Source: Dimorphilus gyrociliatus
Taxonomy: Eukaryota; Animalia; Annelida
NCBI GenBank assembly: GCA_904063045.1
Contig: CAJFCJ010000013.1
Location: forward strand, 602,156 to 666,155
Direction: 5' to 3'
DNA: 64,000 nt
Below the pieces are notes generated by a model. It was not told the origin of the DNA. It searched no databases and saw only the letters and a list, made by a program, of their open reading frames with translations. This document shows, piece by piece, positions 6,024 through 39,538 of the stretch. Position numbers and translations under genes: made by a program. Every line of letters starts with the position of its first letter. The stretch's first letter is position 1.

Positions 6024-6852
6024 AAAGTTTTTCCCCCTATATATAGATATATATATATATACACTGTATATCGTATTGAATATTTTTTTTGTATTCTACA
6101 CACATCTCTATCTCTGTCATTTCTTTTTTTAGCAACATATCATACGGGCTGCTGTGATGAGATTAGCGAAAATATCTTTTTCAATTAACGTCTGTGATGA
6201 AGTTTTCAGCAATAATTTCGCATGTTTAGCATAATAACTATTACAAAAGAAAAGTTTATCTATATACACATATATAGGTGTACTGTATATATTAACGTAC
6301 ACATACGCTAATATAGAGGTATATACAGTATCAACTATAATATAGTATGTAAGCTGAAAAAATGTAGTTTTTCCACAATTTTTAGAAAAAAAAAATCAGA
6401 AAAAAATTTTTTATACACAATTATGTAAGAAAAATTTTTGTACACCTTATCAACCTTTTCATTTATTGGATGGGTAATAACAAAACCATGTATGCTCTTT
6501 AAAAACTGCTGACTTGTTTTCTTGTGTACAAAGTGTATATATATATAAAATATAATAAATTTATATATATTATATATACATATATATCTATATATAATAT
6601 ATGCAAATATATGAAATTTGTATTGATATACAGTATATATTTTTTATGTTTATTTATATATGCTGTATTGATCAACATAACGGATATATTTTATTTTCTA
6701 TTTTTCTAAAAAATTTTTGCAATCATTCTCATATTCGTTTGTTCCTGCAATCTCTGCTTTTTATTAAGTACCATACTCGAAAATTTTGTAAAAGCAAATT
6801 TAATACCATGTTTTGTTTTTTTTTAAATACACATTATTTACATGGTAAAATA

Positions 6853-9296: not shown

Positions 9297-9454
9297 TTCT
9301 GCCGCTTCGTCTGCTCACATGCGATCGCAGCGACATCTGTGTTTTGAAACAAATACGTAGATAATAGTAACGCGAAGCCTTTAATACCAGTAAATCGATA
9401 ATTTATTGGTGTTTACGAGACTTCATTTTTTGTAATAATTTATTCACATATAAT

Positions 9455-11578
9455 CTATTTTATTGACGTTTTTTCAAATTTATCAATAATATTTTTAATT
9501 ATTACATCATGTCTCCGTTTTGAACTTCTCAACACCGGAGTGCTTCCGGAAGAGTTTGAACTTTGGCTTTCGGTTTCCGCTTCAGACGAAGTGGTTGTTT
9601 CTGGAGTATCAGGTGGAGGTTTAGGAAGTCTACGTATACTTCTAGGCGGACGCGGACGAACTGCAATACGTTTCATAAATCCGTACTGCTGTAATCGGTC
9701 CTATTAATTGAAATGTTAGTATGATTTTTTTAAAATAATTCCATTAATTATTATATCCTAATCTATTTACTTCAAATTCACTTTCCCACTGGATCGTATT
9801 TCGGCTTAGTTCGTCTGTCCAATCAAGTTTCGCAGCCAACTGCGCAACCGTATCAATTAAGTCACCTTTTTTAGTTCAAAAGCCAAATTTTAAGTATAAG
9901 AAAATTAGAAAAAAAAAGATTCCTACCACCAACAAATACATCATTCAAGCGTCCTTTTTTAGCAAATGGTCCAACAGCTTTCTTATTAAAAAGACATCTA
10001 GGCACGAAAAACTTGGCACGATCAATAATATTCGAGAATGGTTCAACCTGAAAGTTTTCGTAATAAAGAAAATGATATTAGAGAGAAATAGACAAATTAT
10101 ATATATATATATATATATTCGTGCCTGGAGCGAAGTTCCCATGATAAGAACCAAATCTGCGAATTTCATATCCGACACATACGAATAGAATTTGCTTGTT
10201 AGGTCCTCTCCAAAAAACACTACATCCGGCTTTACTAATCCCTTTTGAAAACAAATAACATCACTTTAGAAATGAATAAAAATGAAAAAAAGAAATAAAC
10301 TCATAAATATTTACGTTGCATCGGCGATTGGAACATCTGGGAATCTTATTGCTAAATATACTGTCCTATATAGGAGAAATATTTTAGTTTGAAATTTCAT
10401 TAATAAAAACTTAAAATAATCGGAAAGAAGTCCTACTTTACCTTGACATCTCCGGGAGATTGGGGAGATCTACAACGAGTACAGCTAGCTGTCTCAAATG
10501 TACCGTGAGCTTCGACGAGTTTACTATTTGGTATTCCACTTACTGCAATAGATTAGTTGTAATTATTATGGTAAAATTTTGCATATTTAGTAAGTTGATA
10601 TTACATTTTTCTAAGCCATCGATATTTTGTGTATAAACACGATGCAATAAATGTTTCTCATGCAGCAAACGAATAAAATAATGAACACTATTTGGTTTAT
10701 GCTTAACAGACGGATAAAGATCTTTAGCTAATGTGTAGAAAGGTCTAGGATTTGTACGAAAATAGTCCATGTCGAATATAGCTTCCGGATAGGGGATGTT
10801 GAATTTTTGCAAATTATAATAAAGTCCTGTCTTAGGTGATCTGTAAAAACAAAAAAAAGGCAAACGATTAAATGACAGGTACTGTAAGCAAATTGATGTA
10901 AAAGAAACTCTAGTGAATGTAAAAGGAGCTAATTACCTAAAATCAGGAATTCCAGAAGCCGTACTGACGCCCGCTCCAATAACCACGACGATATTTGTAG
11001 CTTGACCACGTGCAATTAGATTGGCAATATCTTCAAAAGTGTTACACTTTACGGTTCTCGGTTTGGAACTACTAAATAAAAAAAAATATCGATTGTATTA
11101 GAAGATTCAAAATAAAAAAAAAACAAATCCATATAGAATTGGAAAGAAGAAAAAAAATCAATTTCATTTTACCCAACATCTAAACGGCCAAAGCCGTCTA
11201 AAGCGGCACTCTTTCCTTTAGAGGCGGATCTTAAAGTTGCCCATCTATCATTTTGGAGGGTTTCGGAAGACTTAGCACGAATTTTTGCTATATACAGGAA
11301 AAACATAAAATTATAACTGGAAATGTGGTGAAAAAATAATAAATTAAACAAAAATTATTTAAATATACTTGTTATTCTAGGCATAACTTTGTGGTCAAAA
11401 ATACTGTTGGAGTGATGTGAACAAACTGTGTAGATAGTAATATTAATAAATATTAGTGACAGAATCCATTTTTACCAATTAAGGTTTGAATAAATGCTAA
11501 AGTTTTTGAACGTTGATTAATTTTGCGAGTTATCAACCCTCCTCCATATTTGTTACGCTTAGCAGCGAAAACTTGCAT
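9455..11578 (-). CDS. SIRT3: Class I sirtuin, SIRT3-like NAD+-dependent deacetylase
   Basis: Spliced motifs [75 protein letters not shown]. Basic N-terminus ([25 protein letters not shown]) is compatible with mitochondrial targeting. Start codon is inferred. Confidence 0.88.
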
Positions 11579-14500
11579 TTTCACAGAGGTCAGCACCTTA
11601 TTGGAAATATCGATATCGATATCGATATCGGGTTGTACTAATAAGCGGTTAGAGATAGGTTTTTGCAAACTTTATAATTAGTTGAAAAAGATTAATATTT
11701 GTTAATATTTTATTAGTAGGTGTATATTGTTAGTGGTGTTTGGGAGCCTAGAGCATGGGATATGAGAGGAAATTAGCGAATGTAATTGCGAGGTATAATC
11801 TGCCATTCCTCGACAAAGTATGAATTAAATACTTTTTTTATACACTAAGTGCATATAATAGCTCGCTTATATATTAATAATACTTACTGAGTTGGTTTTT
11901 GACAAAAATGCGGATATTTCTCGACGAAAAGAAGCAATTTTTCTCTGCAAAGTGTTCAATAATTTCACCCGACCATGTGATTTTTCGAAAAGGCCTTATT
12001 AGCGATACCCGGCCGGCTTCTTAGCCAATGAACGATGCTTTAACAACGGTCAGGCCTGACCAATCAATTATTGGTTTTATAAAATTATTTCTTCGCAGAT
12101 AATTTTGAAAATAATACAAATACTAATTTATCAAAAAATGAAACATATTTACATTTTTTTCGATGTAAACATATTATTAAAAAATTGCAAATAATTTAAA
12201 GAAACTGTTTACATCAACTTTAGTAAATGTAAGTGAAAAAAAAAATAAACAATAAAAAGTCATAAAAATATTAATGATAAAAATTTCAGAAGATGGATAC
12301 ATAGATTTACAAAAAATAAAACAAAACAAGGAAGATAAATTGAAAGATTATCGTATAGAAAATATACTTAAATCAATCTTTTGAAGTAATAACTGGTAAC
12401 AAACAGCTAATTATATAGCGCAATTATAACAAGGATAAAACAACAGATGGGGTTGGTTGTTCATATCAAATACCTACTGAAAAAGGACAAATGACGACTG
12501 AAACTTCCCTTTAAGTTTCTTATGAAGTATAAATCACTAAATTAATCTAAGTCTTGTATACTGAATAGATTGATAAGAATTTGTTTCTATTCTTTTAAAA
12601 TTGGATGATCCAATTAAACTCTTACTAGTTCTGTTATATTATTCTCTGATATCCAATTTTCTTCCATCCCTCTCCTTAATCCTACTTACTTTATTTATAT
12701 GAGTCTAGACAGTTTTACATGAGAAGTTTGAGAGGAAATGTGACAATTATCGGCGGTTTTTTTTTATTATTAATATAAATGCACCATTTTTTTAAAATGC
12801 TAACTAAAGGATTTAATAGAAAGAAAGAAAGACTAAGAATTCTTGTTAAGTAAGCGTATGGAGAAATAAAGAACGCTTTATGTAACATTTTTATTATTAT
12901 TATAAATAAATCTCTTTTTCTCCTTCTCCTACTCCCTTTCTTTCTCTCCCACTCTCTCAGTCAATTCTAATATATCTTTCTTTTTTTTCTTTTTTAAATA
13001 TAGAGTTTTCTCGTAACTATTCCTTAATAATGATAGAAAAACATATTTTACCTACTAAATTAATACGTTGACATTAGCATTTTAGAATGATACAACAAGA
13101 TTAAGGAAAAGGTAATTTAAAATGTATGATTAAAAAAAGACTAGATTTTGGACTGAAAACAAAAATATATAAGTGTGAAAAGAAGGAAAAAATCAGTTTT
13201 TTTTATTTAATAAAAAAAATAACACCCAACTTTTACTATTAAAACATCTTCTACTGTTCCTCTAGGCAATTCGTATAAGGTAAATGTATAGTTGTATAAG
13301 GTAATCCTAGAATAGATGTCGTTATATATATACGAATATATATATACCAACGGGTTACGTGATAAACCTCTCTACATTACTTCACTAACGCTTAACGTTT
13401 AATTCAATGTGCAATAATTTCTACCTAAGGGAGAATATAGAATAGACGAAAAAGAGTCTCTTCAAATGAGCGTTTAGGCCTATGGGAACAAAGCATCTTA
13501 TCAATACAATTAATTATTTCTTTCATCTAACTGGATGTATTTATGACTCAACATCAAAATTTATTCCATATAATTATTATCTTATTTAATAGGCTTTAGG
13601 AATCGACTGTTAAATCCAAATTTGCATATAAAGTATAAAACGTATACGTGTATTATTATAAACTAACAAAAAACATATGATATAGACTTAATATTTATTA
13701 CATTCAAAATGGAAAAGAGAAACAGCTATTGATAAGAATCAATAAGAAACTGAAATAGTAAGTAATTTTTACCGGAAAAGAGCATTTTATACAAGTTCAT
13801 TACATATTGTTGCTTTATTTAGAATTGTTGCAAGTTATGGTCTATTAAACGTCTATTTATATAACAATAAAAATTTGTATATATTATGGTAAATGCAGTT
13901 GTTTATTACAGCTTTTTGTGTACTTTATTTTCAATTCCTAGGGTCGTAGGTTTTCGTATCTTGTTTTTTTTTGTTTTTTAAAAACCAATAGATAACCTCT
14001 ATCTTGTTTTTATAGAGATAGATTATTTTATTATCATATTCTCTTTTGCATATTCTTTTCTTCTTCTTCTTCTTCTCTTCTTATTCCTTCTCTTTCCTTT
14101 CGCTATATATTCTTAATATATTCAATGACGTTTTAGAATGTATTATACATTTATAATAGGGTTTTTATTGCTTTAATATTTTAATAGTTTTAATAGAAAC
14201 AATTAATAACAGTTACATATTTTTGTCGTTGTCCTTTAATTATGATCAACTTTTTTTATTGACTCGAGTTCTATTAGTATATTACTCGAGAAAAGAATTA
14301 AAAAAATACAAACTTTCAACCAATCAGCACTTAGCTCCGGAAAATGGATAAATAGCGCGTCAACTGCAAGTCAGGATTATTTGCTTTGTTAGAACGTCAC
14401 CGACAAAGGTATCAGCTCGACTATAGTCTTTTTTTCTAAAAGAAAACTTCTACAAAATCTTTTCAATTTGAAGAAATATCGCATCTTTTCAACTCGAATG

Positions 14501-14937
14501 TAAGTTTTTTAACTATATTTTCATATCCCTATCATATTTTACTATCAATTTAAATAGTTATTTAAAATAGACGCTTTTATTCTATTTCTCCGCTAAATCG
14601 TTTTACTCACTCGTCTATTGTATGGCTGAAAATTAATATTTTTTTTTTACCCTGGACCAGAATTATTCTCTTGTTAAAACAAAATTTATTTTTTGTTTTT
14701 TTTTTTAAAAAAACAAAAAATAAATTAAATAAAAAAATCATTTTTTATTATCTAAGCGAAAACAATTTTAGAGAAAGATTGTTAATGCAAAAGAGTATTA
14801 AACAATATCCAGGCAAGTGTAGACACTTTTCCAAGTTTGTCATATAAAGCTTTTGAAAAGAGAAGATATTTCTTTTTTTTTTTTTTTTGTTTCAAATATC
14901 TACTGTTGTATTATATCCCTGGCTGTTTTGTGATAAT

Positions 14938-14978
<41 letters not shown>
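14938..14978. repeat. (CT)n microsatellite
   Basis: About 20 uninterrupted CT units. Further (CT)n/(GA)n runs near 15296-15345, 28835-28870, 40518-40541 and 44569-44601. Confidence 0.95.
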
Positions 14979-14983
<5 letters not shown>

Positions 14984-15111
14984 ATCTATCTGCCTGTCTG
15001 TCCATTTATCTCCTTTATAACTTTACATTTGTTCACTATGTATCTCTTACTTATTTTCTTATAAATTGTTTTAATTCTTATCTTTTCTTTCTCTTCTCAT
15101 CTACAGAAATC

Positions 15112-16426
15112 ATGGAAGGAAACAATGAAAAAGTAAATTCAACTGTGAATATGGTAAATTATAAATAAAATAAAAGAATATTGACGTTTATTATAAGTAT
15201 ATATATATTTTAAAATCAACAGTCTCCATTCCAATTACCCGACGCAAGCTATCCAAACACTCCTAGAGAATTTGCTACATTTATGGTAATAAACCTTTTC
15301 TCTCTCTCTCTCTCTCTCTCTTCCTCTCTCTCTCTCTCTCTCTCTTTTCTCTATCAATTCTATTCATTAATAGATGGTAAGAAACATTCATCACTAATCA
15401 TGAATGTTACAAAAAAAATGATCTAAGCAGAAATGTCATACATCTATTTATAGCCTATATAATACATTATACATAGTTTTGTCAGTATATGTATGCATTA
15501 ATGTTTTTATAATATTGTGGACTTAGAACTCGGGTAATGACGAAATTATTGCTGGACGAAGCATATCTGAATTGGGATTGCACGACGAGAACGAAATAAT
15601 CAAGGAAGATGATACGGATGTTGAAAGTACGGATAAAGAGTGGCCGGAAGAAAATCATAATGATAGCGACGAAACGAAAGTAAAAAAAAAATATTAATCA
15701 TTTTTTATACATTTTATATTGATCATTTTCCTTTTTTCCTATGATACTAGGCTAATTCGAGACGCCGTTCCTCATTCATAAATAGAGTAGTATTACTATT
15801 CCAATAATATTTCCCTATCCGATAAATATCATGTTTACTATTATTCAATTTCAGATGCCCAGATTCTTTAGGAATATATTCCCCTGCTTAGCCGGAGAGG
15901 ATTCGGTAAGTTTTTATATATCACTTCCTTTTCTTTCTTATGAACTTGATGAATAGGTCACTTTTTTAATTCTCTCTTTTCTATTTTTTCTTTTTTTATG
16001 TCCATCTTCTGTCGAGAATAGAAGGAATCGAAATTTGATTCTGAATCGAAAAATTTTAAATCTACGCAACAATCGAATAGTACTTCAAAACTTTATGATG
16101 ATGGTGAATCTCAGCTTTGTCCAGATTTAAGACAAAAGGTTATTTTCTTACCGGAGGATGGAAATCAATCGGGAACGGAAAGTGTTCAATCAAATTTTGC
16201 AAAGCCGTCCGCTTCCGGCGAGAACGTTCATGATAAATCGGCTGCTGCTGAAGAAAGTTTTATTTGGGATACGAATGAACATAACGATCAGGACACTGAT
16301 TTGGAAAGTGAGGGGGAAAGTTATAAATGTTAGGGAAATTGCAACTTAAGTTTATAAAATTATATAATAAAATATATTTATTTATTACCAACAGCTGAGG
16401 ACATGACAATTTCTGATGCTGATTGA
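15112..16426 (+). CDS. Orphan acidic low-complexity protein, multi-exon
   Basis: Chain of small in-frame exons with consensus splice sites: MEGNNEKVNSTVNM / SPFQLPDASYPNTPREFATFM / NSGNDEIIAG...DETK / ANSRRRSSFINR / MPRFFRNIFPCLAGEDS / KESKF...RQKVIFLPEDG...SYK / last exon ending EDMTISDAD*. No known domain recognised. Confidence 0.65.
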
Positions 16427-16638
16427 GATTGTCTGTCGCCCGGATATGAATGAATCATCAGATAATTGAAAAAAAAAAACAAAAGGTGGGATGGGAAAAT
16501 TAGGGGTATCAGAAATAGTTGAAGATAAGCAAATATATTAGGAGTGAATGTATATGAGTTAAAGAAGAATGTATTCTAGCTCTCTCTCTCTCTCTTTATA
16601 TTTCGTTTGTTTTAGCATGTATACGTTAATATTCAAGA

Positions 16639-16669
<31 letters not shown>

Positions 16670-19409
16670 GTATATGTAATCGTTAATGATAATATGTAAT
16701 AATTATTGATGTTATTGTATTTATTTGTATTTATATACGTATTAGTATATATATTTATAAGTGCAGGATAATAAGAGTTTGTTACAATTTAAAATGTTTC
16801 TTTTTGACGTTTATATGAATGTTAAAGAAAGGAGATTTTTATTATCTAAAAAACGAATAAATTACATTCTATCCCACTGATAAGCTTGTCCTAAACTTTT
16901 AATGCTAAATTAATACCTAATTAATTTATTTCTTATATATTTTTCATCTATTTCCATATTCTTCTCTTTTTGTTTCGTTAGGTGAATTTTTTCTATTCGG
17001 CTTAATTGTTGTTACATTCTTCAATCTAATTAATCTCATCTATAGGAAGAGGGGATTTATAATGAAACAATAGTTTTAATCAAAAATTAAAAGAAATACC
17101 ATAGTATTTTGATGGAAGAGATAGAGATGTAGAGAATATTATCATTATTATATAATAACAAATGTTTATTACTAATATTTTATTTATTAATGTAGGTTAG
17201 TTAAATTCGATAATTAGCCTAATAGATTGAATGTTATTTTCTTAAAGCTTTGAATAAGGAAAACTATATAAATTAAAGAGCTCAACAGCAGTTGTTAATA
17301 TTTATTAAGATAGAACAATCTCCCTCCCTTTCCGCTAACTTTTAACAATAAATAGAACAGAATATTTATTTTAAATTGTAAAGGAACAAACAAACCCAAA
17401 TATCGCTATACAAATCAAAACAAACGCTTTCCTAAGAAGTACATCAAAACGTACTTACACGTTAGAATTGATTAAACGCCGTTATAATATGTAATATACA
17501 AAAAAAAAGGAACTTTCTGTAAGTTTATTTATAGATTATTACGAGTTCAATGACTGATAATTGGAAAAAAATAGTACTGTATATTAGATATGTTTAATTA
17601 GTATTCATTAAATTTCTGTTGTAATGTAGTTTCTCTTCTTTCTTTCTTGCCGGTCAGTTTGTAGCACATAATGTATGTACAGTTTATAATGTAATACTAT
17701 ATAATAACTGTATATACGCGCCCATCCTTCCTTATAACCGTTTAAAGGGATGTTTTTTTTTTCTTTTTACTCCTGTATAGGATCATATGTCGACTTATCG
17801 TCGTCAAGATTGAAAAGTACCTCTCCGTAGATTTTTTCTATGTAACTGTCCATTAAATTTTTCAAGATTTTATTTGCATATCCTTACGGTAACCTTTTCA
17901 GGCAGTAGGATAACTCAATATTGAGACTTTCAAACACCGTCAATCTTGTTATTATGTGTAATTTTAAAAAATTATTACAGAAAATGCCCAAAATCACTCT
18001 TAAACGCCGGAAAATATTGTGTTTCCAGTTGAAAATGCCATTCCAAAGATCTGGAATAGGAAGACAAGAGTACATAGTTTATGAGAACGGGATAACTTTT
18101 CTAGTTATTGAACTTCAAGTTGACTGCAGACACAAAAACGAACTATAAGAGCATAAATCCAGTAAAAAGAACCAATTTAAACTGACAAGGAAAAAAGTTC
18201 TCTTCCTTCCTCCACATTTCATATGCAATCAAACTAGTTTGTAATAGATGTCGTATTGCGGAAGATTTAAAATAGTGAACCATCTCTTTTTTGAACAAAC
18301 TGTATAACTTACCATTGTAAAGTGTGCAGTTGTTAAGACTTATTTGCAGCTTCAACTTAGTTTATACAGTATAATGTTTATAGTATTGTACTCTTTACAG
18401 CTGACTTAAAGGAAGAATGCGTGCTAATTTCTCGTTTAACGCTTCTGACACACTATACCACTTTCGAAATCTATCATAATTTTTTTTTAATTCGCGCTAT
18501 GAACATTTTGTAGAATTATTTAACGTAGAGATGCCTATAAAAATGAATGCTGAATTCTATCTCGTCAAACTTCACTAGGAATCTATGTAAATATGATAAT
18601 TTCAATCTAATTTAATCAAATCAAAACACTTTTCCGAGTTTTTCCTTTTTTTATTGAACGCAAAAAAACAAAGCTTGCAAAAAAACGAAGATCTAAACAA
18701 AATTTTAAATCCCAACACCAAAAAAAATATACCAAGGTTTTTACGATTAAAGTGATTTCTTAAGTCTCATATACGATAAATGTTTAAGCCTCTTGGGCTA
18801 ACAAAAAAAATATGTCAATGTTAGATTTTTTCAGCGAAAAGAGAGTATGCTCAATAGTTGGTTCGTTTATATTCTTACAGTAGAAGAAATTGGTTTTAAA
18901 TGCCCATTATCGCGTTTCGCGTCTTTCCAAATAATATTACATAATATTACCATTTGTGAAACAATACAATTTTACCCTGCACCATAGCAAATAAATCCGT
19001 CAAAGGTATAAGATAACATATTACAAGATTTTTTTCAAGAAATGATCTAATAGCAGCGAAAAAGATCACAAAAATATTAATGAGCCGCAAAAAAAATAGG
19101 AAAAAAAAATACAACTGAGAAAATAAGCCTTTTTTAACGTTGAAAGTTATTCGGTTTCGTTGTTGTACCTTTTGTTGAATAGTTTCCTTAAAAAATTTTT
19201 AAAATGAAGATAAAATCTGCACTATTTTTTTTCCAATGTCCGAAAGGGCCAGACGCACCAATCGTATTTCGATATTTAGAAAAAAAACTCATCCCAATCT
19301 CGTTTCATGATCATATACATTTGCATTTGATCATACACAAAATGTTAAGTTAACATTTCGTCATACGCAAAGCTGCTATTTAACAATAGCCTTTGCCTTA
19401 CTCCTCCTA

Positions 19410-20300: not shown

Positions 20301-21989
20301 CAGTTAAAAAACCTCACTCATTTTCTCTACTCTTTTCTCTTCTCAAGTCACTTTTTCGTTGGTTCCACGTTGACCTCGTTCCAAATGACAGAACCGGGCG
20401 TGGAAATTAATAATTTCGCACTTAATACCACCACGATCATTGGATAAGTTTTGGCGCAAATTTTTAAAAATTTGAACTTAATTACCCCCTATTATCACCA
20501 GTGTTTTCCGTTTTTTTTTCTAAAAACATTTCTTAGAAATGACTACGTTTTGTTTATTTTCACTTTCCACTAATATATACCACTTCAAATAACAGGCTCT
20601 AGTGTTCTATCCACCATTCTTCACACTACTGCTCTGTTTCTCTCCTTGAGCTTCTTGTTATATTATGAACTATCCAAACGGTAAATACAATAATTTACGT
20701 TCAGTATATAGCTTCATTTGCAAATTGTTTTAATGACGAAAAGACATGTAAAGCGATAAGATAATATCTAATCAAACAAAAAAGTACGAAGAGAAGGAAA
20801 GACAGAAAGACATTAAAGATGAACATTAGTGTTGTGTTCTTTCAATTGTTGTCTTAAGAATAGTAGAGAATTTGTGACTGGAAACGATTACCTTACTAGT
20901 TTCGTCCTTCTTTTCATAAAATACTCTATTATTTTGCAGTACAATACATCGTATCGTCTTTTTATTCTTATTAAAAGCTTTATTTAGTATTAGTTGTTTT
21001 GTTGGATTAAATACAGAAAACTGACGGTTGGTCTTTATATTTAATAATTTTATAGAAAAATCGCTTTCTCTCTTCGACTACATTCAGTATATCGTCTCAT
21101 TAAGTTTTCTACTAACCTACTAAAAACAGCACTAATGCTACAATAGCAAATACTATTAATATTACGGCGTCTCTTTTAAGATTCAACGCTTTTATTTTCC
21201 TGCTATTGTACATGTCTAGACGTTATAGAATGAGTAAACGAAAAGGCGAATGAACTCGTAAATAGAAGAGTTAGTTGAAAAAAAAAAGAGACGTCTTCGT
21301 CCTTCTATACACTCTTTTTGTAGATTTTCAGTGAATTTATCTCTCATAAACCAAACGATGATGTTGAACGTCCTTCGTAAAATTCGTCATTGTACATATT
21401 GTAGTATAATTTCTATTCAGGAAAAAAGAGAAACAAACGATAAACGTCGATTTTTTTTTATCAATTAATATTAGATATTTTTAAAGATCTAATTTTATTC
21501 TCCTAATCTCCTTCTTTCTTATTCGTTTTACTTAATATGCACTTTGTTTTTAGATTACTTATTAATTCGCTATCAGTTTACATACATTTTTACTTGAATT
21601 TCCTCTGAGATACTTTACAAAGTTGTCTTTTCACTGTCTATATCTAGTGAATAGTTGAAAACAAAAAAAGACGGCCGAATACAGGATATCAACCTTTGAA
21701 CAGGAAATAACTGAAACAATGACACATATGAAGGTATGCCTGTGGAGTAAGGCCGTTTTACGAGCTGATAGGATTTGCGCACATTTGATTTAACTCTAAC
21801 TAAGCTCTATTCTTAATTGTTAGTGATAGAAAGAAGAATATATAGGAGATATCAGGGAAAGGATCACGAAAACGAATCAGTAAGTTTGTGAGGAAATTCA
21901 GTGCTTAAATGTGAGAACCTGGTGAATGTTTATACCATCCTATTTGATTATTAAAAGGAGTAAGATCACTTTCATAGACACATATTTTG

Positions 21990-22564
21990 TTACAATCGAT
22001 AAATGATGAACGACCTCGTTTGTATTGTTTATAAATTTTTCTCATTACACCAAGTCTTTGTTACATTTGCAACATTAGTGATATTAGCATTTTGTCGCCT
22101 TGCATCTTCGTTTGCTCTTACTCCACAGTCATCCTCTATCTCACTCCAATTGCTTACCTACTTGTTTATGTAGCCTTCGCACATGCAAATATACCGCTAG
22201 TGTTACACTTTGAGTGAGCTATCAATATTACACATGACGTATATTTTCTCTATATCTCTTTTACTTAACGGATACCCGCTGCGCAGTTCCTTCTCTGTAA
22301 CAATTACGTCCATACTTTCTATAATTCTCTATTAATTCTCGTCTAGCACAAACCCTACTGACTCAGCCAACTCAGCTTCCATTTATTGTTATGTATTCAT
22401 GCATACTTCCATCCTCTTTATTTACTATTAACTATGCACGTAGTTTTCATTAAATTCTATTAATTATAACAAAGAGAGCGGAGAGTTTACATTTACAAAT
22501 ATTCTACTATCTCGATACTCCTCTCCCAAAGGAGAGGGGTCGTCAACGATACGGTCCCTACGTC
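21990..22564. other. 575-bp segment present only in the left arm, flanked by direct TTTTG repeats
   Basis: Reverse complement of the right arm reads CATATTTTG-ACTTG. The left arm reads CATATTTTG (21981-21989), then 575 nt, then TTTTG (22565-22569) ACTTG. Confidence 0.75.
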
Positions 22565-23016
22565 TTTTGACTTGAAAAAAAAGCAATGATAGAGAGAGAA
22601 AGAGAACTGATATAGTTAAAAGCAAGAGTTGAAGGCGAGAAATATTGTTTTTCGGCAGTTTCTCTACTCAATTGATGGTCTATGGCGGGATTTTGAGAGG
22701 AAACAAACGTTGTTCTTACCCCTATCGTTAAAGAAAGTCTTGTATGAAGTTCATGTCCCAAATAGTTAAAGGCGTCGACTACTTTCCTTACAAAGTGAAA
22801 GATCCTATCTTGTTCGTGTCCTTTTTGGCATCTATCGATATCGAAGAGAGCTTTATCGATAAGTTTGTCGGATTGTTTCATATGTCTAGTAATTTTACAA
22901 AAGAGAAAGAATGACATCCTTTCCGTTGATTCAAGTTCTTTTCTTAGATTATCAAATGTATTCCAGTCGTAGTATCTATCTCCTAATTCCATTTTCATAC
23001 TCCAATCGTGTTGCAT
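22558..23016 (-). CDS. Uncharacterised ORF, copy 1 (may be a pseudogene exon)
   Basis: 152-aa ORF identical for 150 aa to 32734..33198. Internal G|GTAAGA donor after ...LSLTIG; an in-frame TAA lies 17 codons upstream of the ATG. Confidence 0.4.
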   Translation of the reverse strand: MQHDWSMKMELGDRYYDWNTFDNLRKELESTERMSFFLFCKITRHMKQSDKLIDKALFDIDRCQKGHEQDRIFHFVRKVVDAFNYLGHELHTRLSLTIGVRTTFVSSQNPAIDHQLSRETAEKQYFSPSTLAFNYISSLSLSIIAFFSSQKT

Positions 23017-24042
23017 GATGCTGATAAGTCGATTAGTTTCCTTGTTGTGTTCTTGATTTTTCGATTATACAATATATTCTAATCCGTCTAATGAATATTT
23101 GAATATTGTATGAAAACTCCTTAAAAAGAAGATAGGAAGAGAGATAGATCGATTGAGAAAGGCTTCGACAGAGCAGCAGTTGATATTAACAACTTTGAAA
23201 CTTTTCCGAATATAAAAGGGGAAACTTAAGTTATGAGGTTTTTATAGTTTTAGATACACGAGGGGTCAATATTTGGAGACAATGTTAACCATAGAAAAAA
23301 AGGAAAGTAAAATAAGGTGACTTTTTTATTATTTTGGCCGTTGCCCTCTAATTGTGTCATTAACCTTGAAGACGTTTTTGCTAAGAAAATTTCTTTTTAA
23401 GATTAATGACTATAAGTTTGGTTTTGTGAAAAGTTTTTTTCTTACTTTTTCCATTTAAAAGAGATTCTATTTTTTTTTATCTTTTATTAGACCTTTACAA
23501 TTACATATAAATAGATATCTTTGTAGACTTTCTGCCGCTTCTTTCTTTTATCTTTTTTTAGCTTATTTAGTCTTTTAAATTAAATATTTATATATCATAT
23601 TATAGTTAAACGTCTATTTTTATACTGTTATATGGTAATTATTTCTCAGCCTTTATACTCTGAAAAGAGTAATTGTTTTTTGTAAGTATTTAATATTGAT
23701 ATTCGTTTCCTTCCGTTTGGTGTTTGAAAGTAAAGAATAAAAACATGGCTTTTTTGAACGATCTCATTCAAAATAGCTCTTCATATTTTTTTCAATGATA
23801 GATGGCGATAGTAGTCTATAATAATATAATTATAAAGGAATGTTTCAGTTGCCTAAGTAATTATTTAGGACTTTTGTCTATTTGTCTCTCGATTTCTAAA
23901 TAAGAAAAGTATTTTACATAATTTACGATTATGCACCACTCCATGTACCATAAAAGTAGTCGATACATGTAATAGTAAGGATGATAGATGGCAGCACATT
24001 GGATTATATGATACGACCTTCGCATTGGGTGTTTTGATATTT

Positions 24043-27000
24043 ATGACCATGGAGGAAGATTGCCTTGAAAATGATGTTTTAGTCAGTTTTTCTCGTTATT
24101 TAACAATTATTTAATTATAAATATTAGATATAAACGACATTTTAGTTAAGATTCGCTGTACAACATTGATAAATGCAATGATATATGAAAGATTTGTTAG
24201 TTTATAGGATAATTATATATTCCAATTGGTGATAAACTTTATAGTTTGATTGTAAATTTTAAAAAATTTACAGTATAAGGAGTACGAATGGATTTTGAAG
24301 GAAGAAGTAAAGAATGTTCTCTCCGAAGTGGAAGGTCTACTAAATGTGAGTTTTATTAGTTTTAGCCTAAATCAATAGCTTGCTTTAAAAATTTACTTAC
24401 TTTTTCCTTATTTGTTTTTTTTTATATGCTTATTTGCTATAACCAGGAATGCTGCCGAAGATTTCCTATACATTTATCAGATGTTGCAGGTGAATATCAA
24501 TATTTATATTTACAATATATAGAATATAATCAATACGATTTATCGTAATAGAATATTTTCAAGTAATAATTTAAAAATAAAAGAAAACACAATAAATCAG
24601 TATAGAAAATATATTATGAGTATAAAAGAACACTAAAGATAGGCTTAAACCTAGATTTAATAACGTTGAGATACATATGCTAGTTTATTCTTTTGTTAGG
24701 ATGTTATCTATTCGTGATAACCGTGAAACATCATAGGCACTAAGGTAGGCGTTGGGCTAGTGTTGACTAGAGTTAATGTTGTAGCATTAAAGACTGCTAA
24801 ATAGGAACGTAACCTGATACCATCACTTATAACTGAAAAGAGGAGTCCATCGTCCTCCGCTCTCCTATTCGGATGATGGACAAACCAGGGTTCGGATGGT
24901 ATATGGCCATTTAATTCCCATATTCTATCTCTTCCTTTTCCGCATATATCGACCTTTATTAATGTTACATTGCTAAATTGAATATTATCCGATTTAAAAG
25001 AGATGCCATAAATGAAGCAATAGCTTTTAAATCTGTATAACTCGTTGATTACTGGCATTTCAAGCCCCTGATAAGGTCGTCGATTCGAGAGTAGCTTGTG
25101 TTTTACTATACCACTTTTCAGATCAATAGTATAGCGTTTGAGTGACGGCAAATCGGTAATTTTGTTTCGTACAGTAGAATTGCGGAGTGTATCGAGTTGA
25201 TAATCATGGATTAGGGTAAAACTTTTGTAGGTTGTCGTATCAAATATTATGGCATCGTTGTATTCAAAGGCGTTTACGTGGTGTAGCATAAATTTACCTT
25301 CCGTTCTATATTTTCTGTACTGTAGTGTTCGCAAATCGACAACGTAAACGTCACTTTCTCCATTCTCCCGCCATATAATACTTTTACTAGGATTTAGCGT
25401 TTCAAACAATTTACTTATGCTAATACTAACTGGATTAGCAACGATTATTGCATAGTTAGACGTCAATGAGAAACTGTGAATGTACGGTGCTTCATCAACC
25501 GGAATACTTAGCAAGTTTACGACCTCCCTGGCCGATTTAATTTGTACTAAATGAACGTAATTCAATCCGAAAGGGTTTATTTCCGTGACGATATTGACGC
25601 CTTGTATAGGATGCGAGCTGGATAGGAGTGGAATGCGTCTACTTATTATCGATCTATGTAGAAAATCTGGTGACGTTCTGAAAAGCGTTTCGCCTCGATC
25701 AATATCGATCACATATTTCGACCAAAAGTCACTTATTGCTAAATAATCATCTCCAAATTTCACAATATTAACATTTACATTGTCTGGACCATTGAATAAA
25801 CTTCTTAGTCGATCAATAAGCGATTGACGAGGTACTGTATCGTCGAATAACGTATATAGCGGCGATACTGTATTCCTCTTCTCCGAATCAACAAACGTCC
25901 TCGTCCTTACGAACTTTGCACTGAATGTTGTCCTGTTCGGTTTTAAATTCCATATATGCATTTTACCGAAACCGTCAAATACATGATGAAATTTCCTATC
26001 TCCCATTCCAAAACATCCAGCGCCAATTCTAATCAGTTTTTTATTTAATAACCATGTTGGTAAGGGCTTTTGGAAATGAACGGTAATTTCATCGAATTCT
26101 TTAACATTACTTGTAAAAAGTAGGTCAAAAGCTTTATCATATTCTTTAGCCCAAGCTGTAAGGAGTAATAAATAAATAATTTTCACTAACATCTTCATTC
26201 CTCAATTCCTAACCTTCGAATAAGCCGTTGATCTTTATATTTCACTTTTTATTTAAAAGTAAAGATTTGAAAGATTGCATCATTCGATCGCACGACTTTT
26301 GTCACGTGGTGCACTCATCGATGAACTTGGGCCTAGTTTTTTTTTATTGGATAAATATACAGTATATCTATATAAGTATATTAAATCTAGATATTAAGTG
26401 TTTGTTTTTTTTTTTTTTTTGGCTTTTCATTCGATCCCTTATCAATATATTTATTTAAGAGAAATCATAATTGCAGCTGAAGACAATCTAGTCAAACCTG
26501 AGAAGTATTTGATGTCAACTAACAAGTAAGACAATACGATTGATTTTATTAATTATTTATAAATAAAAACATATATATATATATATATATATATATAGTA
26601 TATTTATACTTTAATTTAAAAAATAGCGGATCTGCACAAATTAAATGCGTTGTAACCCTAATGGGCGATCGACTACTAGAAGCTGATCTGGCTTTGAGAA
26701 TGAATAAACATCAGGCCGTACCACATAAATTTTGTATATATCCAGACGCCCCTTGGTTTCTGCAACAAATCCAAGACGCTGCTAATCATCTCTTGAACGC
26801 TAGGTAAAGATTTGTGCTAGAGAGTTTTTGCTTAGATTTTTAATGATTTTATGATTATATTACTTCTTCTTTATGTTTATTTTTTTCACATTATAAAAGG
26901 GCCACAGCGCAACGATTCGAACCGGATCACGCATTCAGGGATGCCAAACAGGTTTTGCATGTAAGTAGCCAACCTTGTTTTTTCTTTCTCGCCACTTTTT

Positions 27001-32406: not shown

Positions 32407-34100
32407 TGAGGGCAATGACCAAATAAAAAAAATCATCCTATTTTACTTTCATTCTTTCTATAGTTAACATTGTCTCCAAACGTTGACCCTTTGTATAATT
32501 TTAACTATAAAAACCAAACAATTAAGGTTTGGTTTTAAATACCAAAAAGTATCACAGTTGCTCCCGTCAACTGCTGCTCTGTCGAAGCCTTTCTCAATCG
32601 ATCTATCTCTCTTCCTATCTTCTTTTTAAGGAGTTTTCATACAATATTCAAATATTCATTAGACGGATTAGAATATATTGTATAATCGAAAAATCAAGAA
32701 CACAACAAGGAAACTAATCGACTTATCAGCATCATGCAACACGATTGGAGTATGAAAATGGAATTAGGAGATAGATACTACGACTGGAATACATTTGATA
32801 ATCTAAGAAAAGAACTTGAATCAACGGAAAGGATGTCATTCTTTCTCTTTTGTAAAATTACTAGACATATGAAACAATCCGACAAACTTATCGATAAAGC
32901 TCTCTTCGATATCGATAGATGCCAAAAAGGACACGAACAAGATAGGATCTTTCACTTTGTAAGGAAAGTAGTCGACGCCTTTAACTATTTGGGACATGAA
33001 CTTCATACAAGACTTTCTTTAACGATAGGGGTAAGAACAACGTTTGTTTCCTCTCAAAATCCCGCCATAGACCATCAATTGAGTAGAGAAACTGCCGAAA
33101 AACAATATTTCTCGCCTTCAACTCTTGCTTTTAACTATATCAGTTCTCTTTCTCTCTCTATCATTGCTTTTTTTTCAAGTCAAAATATGTCTCTATGAAA
33201 GTGATGTATATCTCTTTATTTAAAAATTAAACAGGATAATATTCTCCATCTTCTCGTCTATAAGCGCAGACTTTTCTCACTAAATTTTTGATCGGCTTTC
33301 GTGATTCTTCCCTGGAATTTTCCTATCCTTCTTTCTATTCGTAACAATTAAGAGTAGAGCTTAGAGTTAAATCGAATGTTTAAAAATCCTATAGTGGATT
33401 AATAAACATTGTAATAAAAATGTATATTAAATACCGGACACAATAAGAATAAGAAAAAAGATTAGAATTTTAATAATATCTAATGTTAATTGATAAAAAA
33501 GGTAAAATACTAATAATCGACGATTACGTTTGTTTTTCTTTTTTCCTGAATAGAAATTATACTACAATATGTACAATGACGAATTTTACGAAGGACGTTC
33601 AACATCATCGTTTGGTTTATGAGAGATAAATTCACTGAAAATCTACAAGAAGAGTGTATAGAAGGACGAAGACGTCTCTTTTTTTTTCAACTAACTCTTC
33701 TATTTACGAGTTCATTCGCCTTTTCGTTTACTCATTCTATAATGTCTAGACATCTAAAATAGCGGGGGAAAAAATAAAAGCGTTGAATCTTTAAAAAGCA
33801 GACGCCGTAACATTAATAGTATTTGCTATTGTAGCATTAGTGCTGTTTTTAGTAGGTTAGTAGAAAACTTAATGAGACGATATACTGAATGTAGTCGAAG
33901 AGAGAAAGCGATTTTTCTATAAAATTATTAAATATAAAGACCAACCGTCAGTTTTCTGTATTTAATCCAACAAAACAACTAATACTAAATAAAGCTTTTA
34001 ATAAGAACAAAGAGACGATACGATGTTGTGTACTGCAAAATAATAGAGTATTTTATGAAAAGAAGGACGAAACTGGTAAGGTAATCGTTTCCAGTCACAA
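32407..34100 (+). repeat. Right arm of inverted duplication (partner 20872-23348)
   Basis: Reverse-complement matches as listed for the left arm. The 619-bp core is 32567-33185. Confidence 0.95.
32734..33198 (+). CDS. Uncharacterised ORF, copy 2
   Basis: 154-aa ORF MQHDWSMKMELGDRYYDW..., identical to 22558..23016 up to the arm junction. Confidence 0.4.
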   Translation: MQHDWSMKMELGDRYYDWNTFDNLRKELESTERMSFFLFCKITRHMKQSDKLIDKALFDIDRCQKGHEQDRIFHFVRKVVDAFNYLGHELHTRLSLTIGVRTTFVSSQNPAIDHQLSRETAEKQYFSPSTLAFNYISSLSLSIIAFFSSQNMSL

Positions 34101-37100
34101 TTAAAACTTTACAACTGATATCTTCGCCTATATTACTTACTTCCACAGTTTATCTGTCTACGACGATATCCTATAACTCCCCTCCTATAAAAATAATTAT
34201 ACTCACATTCTGAAGACTACATGTACAATAGGGTTGAAGTTTGAATGAGATAAATATGACAGGCGATGAACCATTCGTCGTCAAAAGTATGTCTGCCGAG
34301 ACGATAGGGGTGCTAGCTGAAAGTGAAACGTTCAAAATGAGGTATTTCTGAGAAATCTTTAAAAAAAACAAAATATGGAAAGTTTTGGCAGTGTTTTTCA
34401 CAAACTTTTTGGAATGAATTCAAGCATATAAAGGGAATATACGAACTATCTATCATTCATCCAGAAAATGGTACAATAAATCGCCAAAAAGATGTAAACT
34501 ATTGACAATACATGATATTCATCGTGTACTCATTATTACTCTACAACATTTACATATAGTAAGTAACAATTTTTTTCTGGATGACGTAATTTAACGTTGA
34601 TAATAGTAATAATAATAATAATAATAATCATCATCATATGAAGATCGTTTAAACATGGATAACAATAGATGAAAACGTATATTTAGTTTTGCAAGTAGAT
34701 CATATTTTATTTTTATCTTATTGACATAAACAAGTAATAGAAAAAAATAGAGTAGCTTATTTGAGGGACAACAAAATAAAAAACTTGAATCAATATACTC
34801 GGATATTATTTGGAACAAAAACATGTTTTTGAGCGAATGACAAGACAATTTGAGCAATTGCAGTTTTTTTTTTCGTAATTTTTTATTAAGGTTAAAAAAC
34901 AGAGATGCTAAAAACGTTGTTCCGATTTTAGGGTTAAAGACAAAAGTCCTAGATCTGAAGGATTTCTAGTTGAACTCTCACAAAAGAAAGAGTCATAGAT
35001 AGATAAGAAAAAGAATACAAGATGTTGGTAAATTATAAAGAGAAGGAAAAACTGTTTCTTACAGATTGCTAATTATGAAGAAAACAGATTTTTTTTTATG
35101 CCACTTGCTCGCTTCCTGTTTTCCACTCCCTCTCACAATCTATTTAAAGAGATGCGCTATCTTGGGTAATATGTCAATTGTCTACCTATCAGCATTACAA
35201 ATTTGTAGTAACAGAAGCTTAACTTTTCTTCTATAAAGACTATTGAACTCTTGACGCTTTTAATTCGTGTATTATAGCTTTAATATTAAAAAAATCTTAT
35301 TATGTGAAACTATGATAAAATTTAACGTTAATTATTAATGAACTGTTTGTTTTTTAGTTAAATTTTGTGTTTTTCTTTAAAGAATCTTAAAAGAATCACT
35401 TATGATATACATATATATATATATAAATTATATATATATCAATCGTTATTTTATTATCATCTCTACTCATACTAGCTGTACAATATGAGTAGCGTCAATT
35501 AAAACTACTCTCCATTTGCCACAGACGTCATTCTTCTGGCAGGAGCTGAAACGCGAACACCACTTTATCTGAAGGAAAAAAAAGGTTCTTCCTCTCCCGA
35601 AGTGTACAATGTTCTTTGAAAAAAAAAACAGGTATGTAAAACATTTAAAAAAAAAATAAAGAACGTTTTATGGTATGTAAAATTTAAATTTTTTGTTAGG
35701 CACTTGTTTGAAGAAAGCCATTTGTAGAATGGATGAGAGGACAAGCGAAAGAATTACAAGAGCACAAATGACCAATTTTTTTCAACGTTTAAGAACGGTG
35801 TCGAGACAAAATAAAAGTTTTTCACCTTGAAGTAAGAAGTAACATACTATCTCTCGTATAGAAAATCAAATAGGTTATGTATGTATTATAAGCAATACTT
35901 TACCAAAACGAGCAATGACAATTGATTAATGGCTCTTCCTTTACATTTTAGGTTTAGCATTAGCAGATTTTAACTAGAAGTGATTTGGTAAAGATAATTG
36001 CTCGTTTCCAATTTCACATAAAGTATACTGGGTGGACAAAGGAAGAAATAAGAGTTTTAAAATTGTCGCCTTGAACATAAAAGCCTATAAGCCACCTTTG
36101 AGTTTGTTACATTCTTAGAAAAGCAATTGTAAGACTTTTGTCATAACTGAAAATTGAAAAGTACATGATGGAAATTTTGACATTTTACGGCACTCTTGTT
36201 ACTTTATGGCAGAAGAAATTTACCTTTGAGAAAAGTATTATTGCTTTAAAAGTAAATCGCTGCTTATAATTATTCTTTAGGATACAAGGAATTGATATAA
36301 TAGGTAACTGAATGTGTTTCAGGTGAACATTCTGTATATAGAAAGAGAATTTAAGCAAAACTATTTTCTGAGGAATTGAACTCTGGAAGGGTGAATGAAA
36401 GTTGATTTCTATACAGGGTATCGCTTATTAAATTAATGGCGAACTTAAATTACTTGAATAGTATCAAATTCGACTGCTTTAAAAACTCAAAAAAAAAGTT
36501 GACAACTAAGAAATTCCACGCGTGATTTAAAATTGTCAGTATTTTGAATTGAAGCTCTAATCTATGTAAAATAGCCAATATAAACGAGATTGACTTTTTG
36601 TTTTTACTCCCAAGGCAGGCAAAGAAAGAAATACCCTCGAATCAAATTCAATTAGGAGTTTATTGTTTGCTGATTTTGTAGAAGTAATTTACTATTGAAA
36701 AGGTTCTTACAACCTTGAAGAATTTGAGAAAAATTTTTAATTGTTTCATTGGATGTGGTTTCTATTGGTGATTTGATACTTTTCTAAACCGCAAACTCAT
36801 TTGAAACTGGTTTGTCGGTTATCCTTTAATATCATTTCTTAAAAAATCTATTTCATAAACTAGAAAAATTGAATGGAAATTTATTACATAGCCATACCGA
36901 TAGCATGGTGTATTTGTACATCTACAGGTCGTCTATAGGCTTGGTGTGAACTTTAAACCGACGATTCATTGTTACAAACAAGTTGTCAGTTGGCTAGGCA
37001 CAGCGAACTTGTCAGAAATTCAATAGAACAAATGATTAAAAGTTTTGTTATCTACAATTGTCATTAGACGAATTCAAATTTACGAATGAATACATATGAT

Positions 37101-37194
37101 GAATATCTGCAATTGGCTATTGGGTGCTGGATTTTTTTGTTCCATATAAATTGCCTATTTGCTTTCGGAAAAAGAATCAAAATTGAGTGCAAGT

Positions 37195-37292
37195 CCCTTG
37201 CATGGTCCCACCTCAACGTGGTGCAGGGGTGATAACGTCCTAATAAAGATCTGACTGGCAACTCTGGCAAGATTAGGACGGCTAACGGGACC
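37195..37292 (+). ncRNA. HDV-like self-cleaving ribozyme, copy A
   Basis: P1 CCCUUGC (37195-37201)/GCAGGGG (37223-37229); P2 GGUCCC (37204-37209)/GGGACC (37287-37292); P3 ACC/GGU; L3 UCAACGU; P1.1 CA/UG; P4 CGUCCUAAU (37236-37244)/AUUAGGACG (37272-37280); J4/2 GCUAAC with predicted catalytic C at 37282. Confidence 0.88.
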
Positions 37293-37459
37293 AAGGAGTA
37301 GTTTGAAGGTAGATGGAGGCCATTCAATAAACTCCTAAAGGATACTAAATAAGAATATAATGATGGAAAGTGTTGATGGTGATGAAATGATAGTCTGTAA
37401 ACGTAGAGGACATAAAGAAGTAGATATAAGAAATTGATGGAAAGAAGAGGAAAAAAAGA

Positions 37460-37650
37460 GGCAGTTGACGATAAAGGAGGAGAATAATGATGATGATAAA
37501 AGGAGGAGAATAGTGATGATAAAAGGAGGAGGATGTTGATGATATAGGAGGAGAATAATGATCATAAAAAGAGGATGATTTTGATGGTAAAGGAGGAGAA
37601 TAATGATGATAAAAGAAGAGGAGGATGGTGATGATGCTAAAAAGATGATG
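37460..37650 (+). repeat. Degenerate purine-rich minisatellite (about 21-24 nt unit, GATAAAAGGAGGAGAATAATGAT-like)
   Basis: About 7-8 imperfect tandem units. The minus-strand ORFs 37335..37565 and 37345..37722 are by-products of this repeat. Confidence 0.8.
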
Positions 37651-39538
37651 AATAGATGTTGAAGAAGTAGATAATATAGAAGTCGAAGAAAAATTGAAGA
37701 GAAATTGAGCCATTGTTTCCAATGATGGAAATAATAAATTAAATGTATTTGAAATGTATATGATAATAGTATAAGTTTACATATTGAAAATTGATAGATA
37801 CAAAACTGAAAATTTTTCAGTGCATTGAAAGGAAATGTGTATGTGGTTTTATATTTGTCGAAAGAGTTTTAAAAAATGGAAAATTGGACAACCCTATCAG
37901 AATGATAGATTTTTTTCCTTGATTCGTATAATTTTGCATCCAGTTGATATGGGTCCTTGGAAAAAAAAACAGTGCAGATTTTAATTTTTTTTTAAATTTA
38001 AAAACGCGAATAAGCAAAAAAGTTTTATGATAATTTTTGAAAGTGTTTTTTTGCATTTGCGTTGTCTTGAAAAAGGCATTTAGCTTTATTATCATTTGAA
38101 AGTATACTAAATTTATAACTCGTATCAGAGAGAAAAAGAGTATCTTGCTTTGTAGAGACTCTTAGTTTAATTATACCTGAAAATCTTTTGTAATGTGTTT
38201 TATTTTCTGACGGATGAATTTTGGTGTTGGGCTAATGTTGTTGAACAAATGGTAATTATAAGTTTTATTTTTTTGAAAGACACTTGTAGTGAGAATAAAT
38301 AGGTTAGTGCTTGACTGCTGGAGAATGATACGGAAATCAACTTTTGACCATTATTATTCCTTAGAGACTTATAATTTTGACTTATTATGCTTTAATTTTT
38401 TTTTTGCTACAAAGGGGCTTTTTTCATATTTTGATGCTGAAGAATACCGAAGAAGGAACTCAGTTTTATATATTTTGATCGGTGTTGGGATGCAATGTTC
38501 TGCAAACAGCATAGTGTTTTGAATAAAAGAAAAGGAACAAATGTACTGTTTTGCTCTTTTTGTATTTGCTCGCAGCTGTAATATTTTAATCTCTAGCAAA
38601 TAAGAGATTGTAGGCCTCTGATATCCTCCCTCTCGTAATCTGACATGAACGGGAATCGTATTGCAAAAGTTAGATATTTAAGAATTGGCACACACTTGTA
38701 GGGTAAATTTAGGCTATGTTCTTGATAGAATCTATGAAATGAAATATTCCTTGTTCGTTTCATAATGAGGTCCAGAAAGTGGAACAACGATAATTGTATT
38801 TTTCCCATGCAGAAATTTTTCGCTAACGATTCTAGGCGACACAAATTTTTTGTTTTATAGATTACACTGCTTTAAACAAACACGGAAAAAGTAATCTATT
38901 GGCATATAGCGTATTTTATTTCGTTTTCTGCTATCAGCATCCTTCTAAATTATCGAATAAATACTGTATATTAATGTTTTAATGGTCCTGGTTTCCCTAC
39001 CTCCCTTACCAAATGGAATCGCTTTCTCATAAGTCATTAATTCCTATTGCTTTTTCCTTTGCTATAATTAACTATTTATTTTGTTGTTGTTTCTGTTGTT
39101 ATTTCACGATTAACTTCATCTTTTTCTTCTCTCTCTCTCTCTTAATCTGTCAAAAATAATGAGAGATATTCTTACTCTTTTGGGTACGAAATTTAAAGGA
39201 GTATACTGAATAGAACAAACACACTATTCGTATAGAAAATAAATGAAGCATTGTTCTATCTTCTCTCTTTTTTAATTTCCATGAACTTGCTAGAATAAAA
39301 TCATCATACGATATCTTGGTGAAAATTTTTTATAACACTATTGATTTAAGATCTTTATAGGCTATTTGTGAATAAATTGTCATAATCGAATTTTTATGTT
39401 AGTATTTACCGTAAGTTGTAAAAGTGCAAAGGTTAAATTCTCGCTTTCTTTAATAGTTGACGTACTCGTTTTTTTTTGATTATTGTGGTGCTTTTCGTCG
39501 TTGAATATCATTAAGAGGGAGTACCTACAATGCGAACA

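Follow-up and report, generated by a model that had tools for sequence, protein, structure and literature searches.

Genomic setting and copy number

We analysed a window of 64,000 nucleotides (nt) from the annelid Dimorphilus gyrociliatus, which corresponds to positions 602156-666155 of contig C13 in an AT-rich assembly of 77.9 Mb and 349 contigs. The published assembly comprises about 350 scaffolds, with a median intron of 66 bp (PMC7854359). The window contains animal genes (tetraspanin, RPE65-type oxygenase, TBCC and RING) and two predicted HDV-like self-cleaving ribozymes. Copy A is located on the plus strand at 37195-37292, with its predicted cut between 37194 and 37195. Its paralogue, copy B, is 109 nt long and occupies 19518-19410 on the minus strand, with the catalytic cytosine predicted at 19420. 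The two ribozymes point outward and are 17.7 kb apart.

An inverted segmental duplication (20872-23348 versus 32408-34100) brackets a 9-kb gene island, and both ribozymes lie outside it. Identity between its blocks is mostly 90-98%, dropping to 73% in one of them. Divergence between the two ribozyme-bearing units greatly exceeds that between the duplication arms, suggesting that these units are older than the arms or that the arms were homogenised later. Each arm contains an open reading frame (ORF) of 152-154 amino acids without a Pfam match (22558-23016, minus strand; 32734-33198, plus strand), and RNA contigs of the right arm show CT..AC joints, indicating splicing on the strand opposite the arm ORF. 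The island between the arms carries an intronless 496-amino-acid RPE65/carotenoid oxygenase ORF (24708-26198, minus strand; Pfam E-value 4.7e-69).

Transposable elements are few in the D. gyrociliatus genome and are mostly Ty3/gypsy (PMC7854359). At least 150 RVT_1 matches were detected in the genome and none in the window, the nearest on the contig being about 300 kb away. We found no reverse transcriptase or endonuclease in the window and no ATG-initiated plus-strand ORF of more than 49 amino acids behind copy A, in agreement with the first-pass annotation, which had recognised no retroelement ORF downstream of the ribozyme.

The 17-mer CCACCTCAACGTGGTGC from P3/L3 of copy A has two sites in the window, versus 0.01 expected by chance; the second is a one-mismatch twin on the minus strand and belongs to copy B. 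BLAST, a degenerate pattern and a covariance model built from copies A and B (R1) each identified exactly two ribozymes of this A/B subtype in the genome. This count refers to the A/B subtype only; R1 gave no score to the repeated canonical HDV-like ribozymes that a loose pattern search located on three other contigs (C137:26840-27042, C184:21818-27627 and C222:7698-7738; loci L043-L047). The latter have a G1.U start, a P2 of CACUGU/ACAGUG and a J4/2 of GGCUAA, and are followed by conserved sequence. A search of the whole genome with the Rfam model RF00094 returned no match at E-values up to 10. The genome-wide absence of other HDV-like types from such results says little, because the RF00094 scan found none of them and the loose pattern did.

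The 1.36 kb behind copy A has no other match in the genome, and the best conserved 24-mer of the RNA behind the ribozyme is found only in A and B. The genome-wide BLAST search that had been recommended for copy number found two copies, and no reverse transcriptase or endonuclease ORF follows copy A.

Fold, conservation and distribution of the ribozyme core

Copy A forms a complete HDV-like nested double pseudoknot in which every helix pairs fully, as read directly and as checked by script. On the plus strand, P1 (37195-37201/37223-37229; CCCUUGC/GCAGGGG) has seven of seven pairs, one of them U.G, and P2 (37204-37209/37287-37292; GGUCCC/GGGACC) has six of six. P3 (37210-37212/37220-37222; ACC/GGU), P1.1 (37214-37215/37230-37231; CA/UG) and the base of P4 (37236-37244/37272-37280; CGUCCUAAU/AUUAGGACG) are likewise fully paired, with three, two and nine pairs, respectively. 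L3 (37213-37219) reads UCAACGU, with U and G at the expected places, J4/2 (37281-37286) reads GCUAAC, and the -1 nucleotide is U. The predicted catalytic cytosine within J4/2, at 37282, is the putative equivalent of HDV C75, a role assigned by alignment with the HDV model. In both copies the L3 U and G (metal site) and the J4/2 cytosine align with conserved columns of that model, the canonical order P1, P1.1, P2, P3, P4 is present, and the predicted cut site falls at the first base of P1. Every element of the HDV fold that had been written out in the first-pass annotation, including the helices, L3, J4/2 and C37282, was correct in our script check.

The covariance-model search that had been suggested gave an end-to-end match of RF00094 (HDV_ribozyme; model positions 1-89) to 37193-37294, at a score below the gathering threshold (35.1 bits versus 50; E-value 0.0011 in a local scan of 301 nt against all 4227 Rfam families). 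The match of RF02682 to copy A reached 23.1 bits, and copy B scored 33.9 bits with RF00094 and 20.9 bits with RF02682, whose gathering score is 44. A default Rfam scan of the window, which applies gathering thresholds, accordingly listed nothing. The HDV models leave P2 unscored as base pairs and penalise a long P4, and P4 is long in both copies (45 and 56 nt). Folding the ribozyme alone with ViennaRNA was no better than folding shuffled sequences (z-scores of -1.19 and -0.60), values that are uninformative because the ribozyme is a pseudoknot.

The G1.U37 wobble at the cut-site end of P1 is absent, and both copies have C:G there. This may slow cleavage of copy A. The wobble is typical of HDV-like ribozymes and not strictly defining, as the experimentally active L1TcRz also lacks it. 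A hairpin (GUGCAAG-UCC-CUUGCAU) can be drawn across the cut site at 37187-37203; it could tie up part of P1 before cleavage and thereby act as a possible brake.

In the A/B alignment, the 24 pairs of P1, P2, P3, P1.1 and the P4 base are standard in both copies (48 of 48 cells), versus 39-50% standard pairs in controls in which the partners were slid by one to three columns. Fifty-eight of the 65 core columns are identical. All four helix substitutions preserve pairing: P2 has a compensatory change from C:G to U:A, and there are two C-to-U changes opposite G, one in P4 and one in P1, whose 5' strand is CCCCUGC in copy B and CCCUUGC in copy A. Three of the seven differing columns are outside the helices, at L3 position 4 (UCAUCGU in copy B, UCAACGU in copy A) and J1/4 positions 3-4. 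In contrast, distal P4, which varies in sequence as well as in length, cannot be aligned, no similarity was found 5' of the two cut sites, and the best-aligned stretch downstream of the ribozymes is only 57-59% identical. Because the pairs were kept while distal P4, the flanks and the downstream module diverged, the core appears to be under purifying selection for its fold, an argument drawn from the slid controls and from two paralogues of a single genome. Shuffle statistics on this alignment were uninformative for so small a sample.

Copy A had also been likened to the Pr77 promoter-ribozyme of trypanosomatid L1Tc/ingi retroposons. The R77 oligonucleotide (PMC1874656) indeed contains the exact 17-mer, starts with CCCTGGC and later contains GCTAAG, and a C+1 start paired to G is common to the annelid copies and L1Tc. 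Compared by eye, the first ~35 nt are very alike, 17-mer included, and the rest is unrelated. On these features, 'L1Tc-like subtype' would be a fair description of copies A and B.

The same core is found well beyond trypanosomatids. A descriptor scan of loci fetched by pattern showed that several sources contain complete HDV-like folds whose P3/L3 is the same ACCUCNNCGUGGU. One is phage-like (IMGVR_UViG_3300006736_002004, ~1059-1160; locus L021, with the same sequence in L029 and L031) and carries GCUAAG. Its 17-mer is exact, the following 13 nt differ by one base from copy A, and the locus nearly matches copy A in P3/L3, the P1 3' strand and J1/4; the fold is assigned from our own descriptor and a partial R1 match, and an Rfam scan gave it no score at E-values up to 1. 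Metagenome-assembled genomes (MAGs) of Ignavibacteria (three scaffolds), Poribacteria, Dehalococcoidales and Dehalococcoidia provide further folds, with GCUAAC, GCUAAG or GCGAAG. These are compact candidates with full P1/P2 and a short P4 (L053, L059 and L095 in one Ignavibacteria MAG; L067; L088; L099). The thrice-repeated Ignavibacteria candidate may head a mobile element. Apart from these folds, viral and bacterial matches to the 17-mer or the pattern were mostly attributed to chance in GC-rich DNA. The Rfam consensus of the F. prausnitzii type is close to the core of copy A, and the canonical repeats on C137, C184 and C222 have a near-identical core (CCUCCACGUGG and GGCUAA).

The phage-like, MAG and C137/C184/C222 ribozymes all start with G1.U; among the sequences compared, the C1:G start is found only in the annelid copies and L1Tc. 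The authors of the trypanosomatid work stress this difference between C1:G and G1.U (PMC4035085). An origin in the ingi clade, as proposed in the first-pass annotation, is nevertheless not demonstrated, because the P3/L3 core together with a GCUAAC J4/2 is also found in phage-like and bacterial MAG folds, and the same core occurs in other HDV-like ribozymes. The shared core would thus reflect constraint on the catalytic core and not ancestry. Neither copy was found at the 5' end of an L1Tc/ingi LINE, SINE, SIDER or DIRE, as the window has no reverse transcriptase or endonuclease and the subtype has two copies. The alternative suggestion of a SINE/SIDER-like remnant also fits poorly with two copies, unique downstream sequence and the absence of a genomic A-tail. 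More generally, identity within the ~30-nt catalytic core is unusable for inferring the retrotransposon clade of a ribozyme.

Host transcript and the RNAs behind the ribozymes

Two public runs, X2 and X1, include the locus, both as assembled contigs. X2 was obtained from the same organism with the library type unrecorded, and is RNA-derived, since its contigs skip GT..AG introns; X1 is a metatranscriptome. Spliced contigs of both runs reveal a host transcript on the plus strand 5' of the cut (35548-37194), with exons at 35548-35631 (at least), 35700-35878, 35952-36251, 36323-36534 and 36619-37194 and GT..AG introns of 68-84 nt. A 1268-nt X2 contig with a depth of 75 joins 35700-35878, 35952-36251, 36323-36534 and 36619-37182. 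The 11 loose letters that open this contig match the exon end at 35631, which is followed by GT, and X1 shows the same 35631/35700 junction. Read exon by exon, the host exons from 35700 on contain at least two stops in every frame, and in the short first exon a single frame is free of stops. The host transcript is spliced, non-coding and on the plus strand. Copy A had been described as intergenic; this holds with respect to protein-coding genes, but the RNA contigs place the site within a transcribed, spliced non-coding exon.

The upstream X2 contig is unbroken from the acceptor at 36619 to 37182, so transcription reaches the ribozyme. No X2 contig covers 37183-37199 (the bin 37000-37199 has a depth of 68.5, which equals 74.9 x 183/200). 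Depth is 4200-17700 across 37200-38599 and 169 after 38600. The step at the cut site is thus ~60-fold or more, downstream over upstream. The uncovered stretch is the only one between the 75-deep and the >4000-deep transcript, and it brackets the predicted cut, to within 12 nt upstream and 5 nt downstream; these data are contigs and not reads, in which RNA ends are not base-exact, a tail is not provable and a coverage hole by itself proves nothing. Given this depth step and a core that appears to have been selected in two old paralogues, copy A is very probably an active HDV-like self-cleaving ribozyme, as had been claimed, of a subtype in which a C:G pair starts P1.

The abundant RNA, hereafter RNA A, is non-coding, presumably starts with the ribozyme and extends for ~1.37 kb on the plus strand (37195-38570; 3' end approximate). 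Its AATAAA signal (38522-38527) is just before the fall in depth, and no genomic A-tail was found at its 3' end. RNA A is presumably polyadenylated, with no poly(A) tail seen in the contigs. A further AAUAAA hexamer (37242-37247) lies inside P4 of copy A, partly within the stem, and is evidently unused as the main poly(A) signal, because depth stays high 1.3 kb beyond it. X1 contains pieces of the abundant RNA that are 95-99% alike (37250-37403, 37974-38291 and 38298-38504). RNA A includes a purine-rich 23-nt tandem repeat of 7.3 copies with GGAGGAG (37466-37635), which is absent from the RNA behind copy B. The peak of X2 depth falls over this repeat and is probably owed to the repeated words. 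Rfam hits to mir-1323 (26.8 of 98 bits) and sR52 in RNA A were far below threshold and were taken as chance.

Behind copy B, a corresponding RNA B is predicted on the minus strand (18630-19409), ending ~0.89 kb from the cut site at 19518, with an AATAAA (18655-18650) at a place homologous to that of RNA A. In both RNAs, AGGAG-rich sequence directly follows P2. A module of RNA A (37952-38520, plus strand) is homologous to 18680-19241 (minus strand) of RNA B, with ~57-59% identity and short near-identical islands. A six-frame comparison of the two RNAs detected no shared peptide outside the ribozyme.

Proposed function and comparison with known systems

Given the analyses presented above, we consider it likely that the ribozyme cuts the non-coding host transcript and thereby forms the 5' end of the abundant ~1.37-kb RNA. 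Copy A, located in the terminal exon of the spliced plus-strand transcript, would fold during transcription into its nested double pseudoknot. The J4/2 cytosine at 37282 and a bound Mg2+ would then cut the backbone between 37194 and 37195, a chemistry that we infer from the ribozyme family. For L1TcRz, which has the C+1 start and the same P3/L3, in vitro cleavage in the presence of Mg2+ yields a 5'-OH end (PMC3185411). The upstream piece, ending in a 2',3'-cyclic phosphate and lacking a poly(A) tail, would stay rare. The downstream piece would begin with a 5'-hydroxyl on the compact ribozyme fold, run ~1.37 kb to the AATAAA at 38522 and accumulate to ~60 times the level of the host exons or more. 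The abundant non-coding RNA would in this way receive its 5' end from the ribozyme, which would probably also protect it, the 5'-OH and the fold together providing the stabilisation. The paralogue B, in opposite orientation ~18 kb away, may do likewise for RNA B. Among the options raised in the first-pass annotation, that of a domesticated RNA-processing element fits the two copies, the unique downstream RNA and the depth step at the site.

The depth step would also follow simply if RNA A had its own promoter at the ribozyme or immediately 5' of it. This could be the TATAAA at 37145, which precedes the cut by ~45 nt, or an internal, Pr77-like promoter. The ribozyme would then trim a short leader, and the upstream transcript would be weak read-through. 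In L1Tc the same 77 nt are both promoter and ribozyme (PMC3185411, PMC3383444). We regard this explanation as unlikely, as no TATA is present at the corresponding position of copy B, the upstream flanks of A and B are unrelated and the unbroken contig from 36619 to 37182 indicates that transcription reaches the ribozyme; loss of an untailed 5' fragment accounts for the ratio equally well. A more speculative combination, to which we assign little probability, is that the module is an animal dual promoter-ribozyme that derives from an ancient ingi/Vingi-type head and was domesticated, and that it both drives and 5'-processes the abundant RNA. If so, the RNA could function without a cap, its GGAGGAG repeats making it, for example, a scaffold that binds proteins.

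The likeness of the first 35 nt to L1Tc Pr77, C+1 start included, raises the question of whether the locus is instead a 5'-terminal relic of a non-LTR retrotransposon or of a SINE/SIDER-like element, possibly ingi/Vingi-related, whose RNA has no host function. Most eukaryotic HDV-like ribozymes head non-LTR elements (PMC4035085, PMC3774820), and the assembly does contain ribozyme-headed repeats on other contigs. The core sequence is however generic to the HDV-like family, only two copies are present, and the unique downstream RNA leaves no parent element with the same tail. There is also no genomic A-tail at the 3' end and no reverse transcriptase nearer than ~300 kb. The paralogues are old, the core is intact in both and copy A is very highly expressed, which makes a relic of this kind quite improbable. 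It is more doubtful still that the fold is an inactive relic or look-alike, with the RNA 5' end produced by ordinary initiation and matching the predicted cut by coincidence. The Rfam scores under gathering, the missing G1.U37 wobble and the inability of contigs to fix RNA ends would agree with this. Against it, both copies preserve every position of the catalytic core although they have otherwise diverged too far to be aligned, pairing is kept in all four helix substitutions and the coverage hole brackets the predicted site (12 nt and 5 nt).

The ribozyme itself would be an additional member of the known HDV-like family, and its C+1 form indicates that an L1Tc-type version of the HDV fold exists in animals. 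A search of the literature on HDV-like ribozymes in annelids or Dimorphilus, or at the head of polyadenylated long non-coding RNAs, yielded nothing relevant, and no case was found in the searched literature of such a ribozyme heading a non-coding RNA that is abundant, non-mobile and conserved between paralogues. HDV-like ribozymes are widespread, but a known cellular job is lacking for almost all of those found outside retrotransposons and the virus itself. In this worm, one such ribozyme seems to set the 5' end of a non-mobile RNA that is both abundant and conserved, and it does so twice, in old paralogues. This small, tractable animal genome offers a testable case of a ribozyme as cap substitute or end-maker for a host RNA.

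The closest comparison is with L1TcRz/Pr77, which shares with copy A the HDV-like fold (PMC3185411, PMC4035085, PMC1874656), the identical 17-nt P3/L3 and a J4/2 containing GCUAA. Both L1TcRz and the annelid copies have a C-rich P1 strand on the 5' side and a C:G start to P1 (CCCUGGC there versus CCCUUGC/CCCCUGC here). An abundant RNA acquires its 5' end through the L1TcRz cut, as we infer for the cut of copy A. In contrast, the two ribozymes differ in P2, in P4 and throughout the sequence beyond about nt 37, P1.1 comprises two pairs in copy A versus one as described for L1Tc, and the trypanosomatid ribozyme heads retroelements, whereas the annelid one is in an animal, has two copies only and does not. 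The HDV genomic ribozyme and the families RF00094 and RF02682 (F. prausnitzii type) share the double pseudoknot, L3 and J4/2 core; copies A and B differ from them in the replacement of G1.U37 by C1:G, in the long P4 and in scores below gathering.

The 5' ribozymes of animal R2, RTE and other non-LTR elements release an RNA co-transcriptionally with the ribozyme at the new 5' end, as we propose for copy A. Unlike those of R2 and RTE, the RNA released here would lack an ORF and be non-mobile and single-copy per paralogue. The mammalian CPEB3 ribozyme is likewise HDV-like and fixed in a host gene outside transposons. That ribozyme is intronic, belongs to a coding gene and yields no accumulating product, whereas copy A is in an exon of a non-coding gene and its putative 3' product is the major RNA. 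SPA-lncRNAs and sno-lncRNAs are polyadenylated non-coding RNAs whose 5' end is made by processing and is guarded by a structured module instead of a cap. Exonuclease trimming leaves a snoRNP in that position, whereas the corresponding module here would be a self-cleaving ribozyme.
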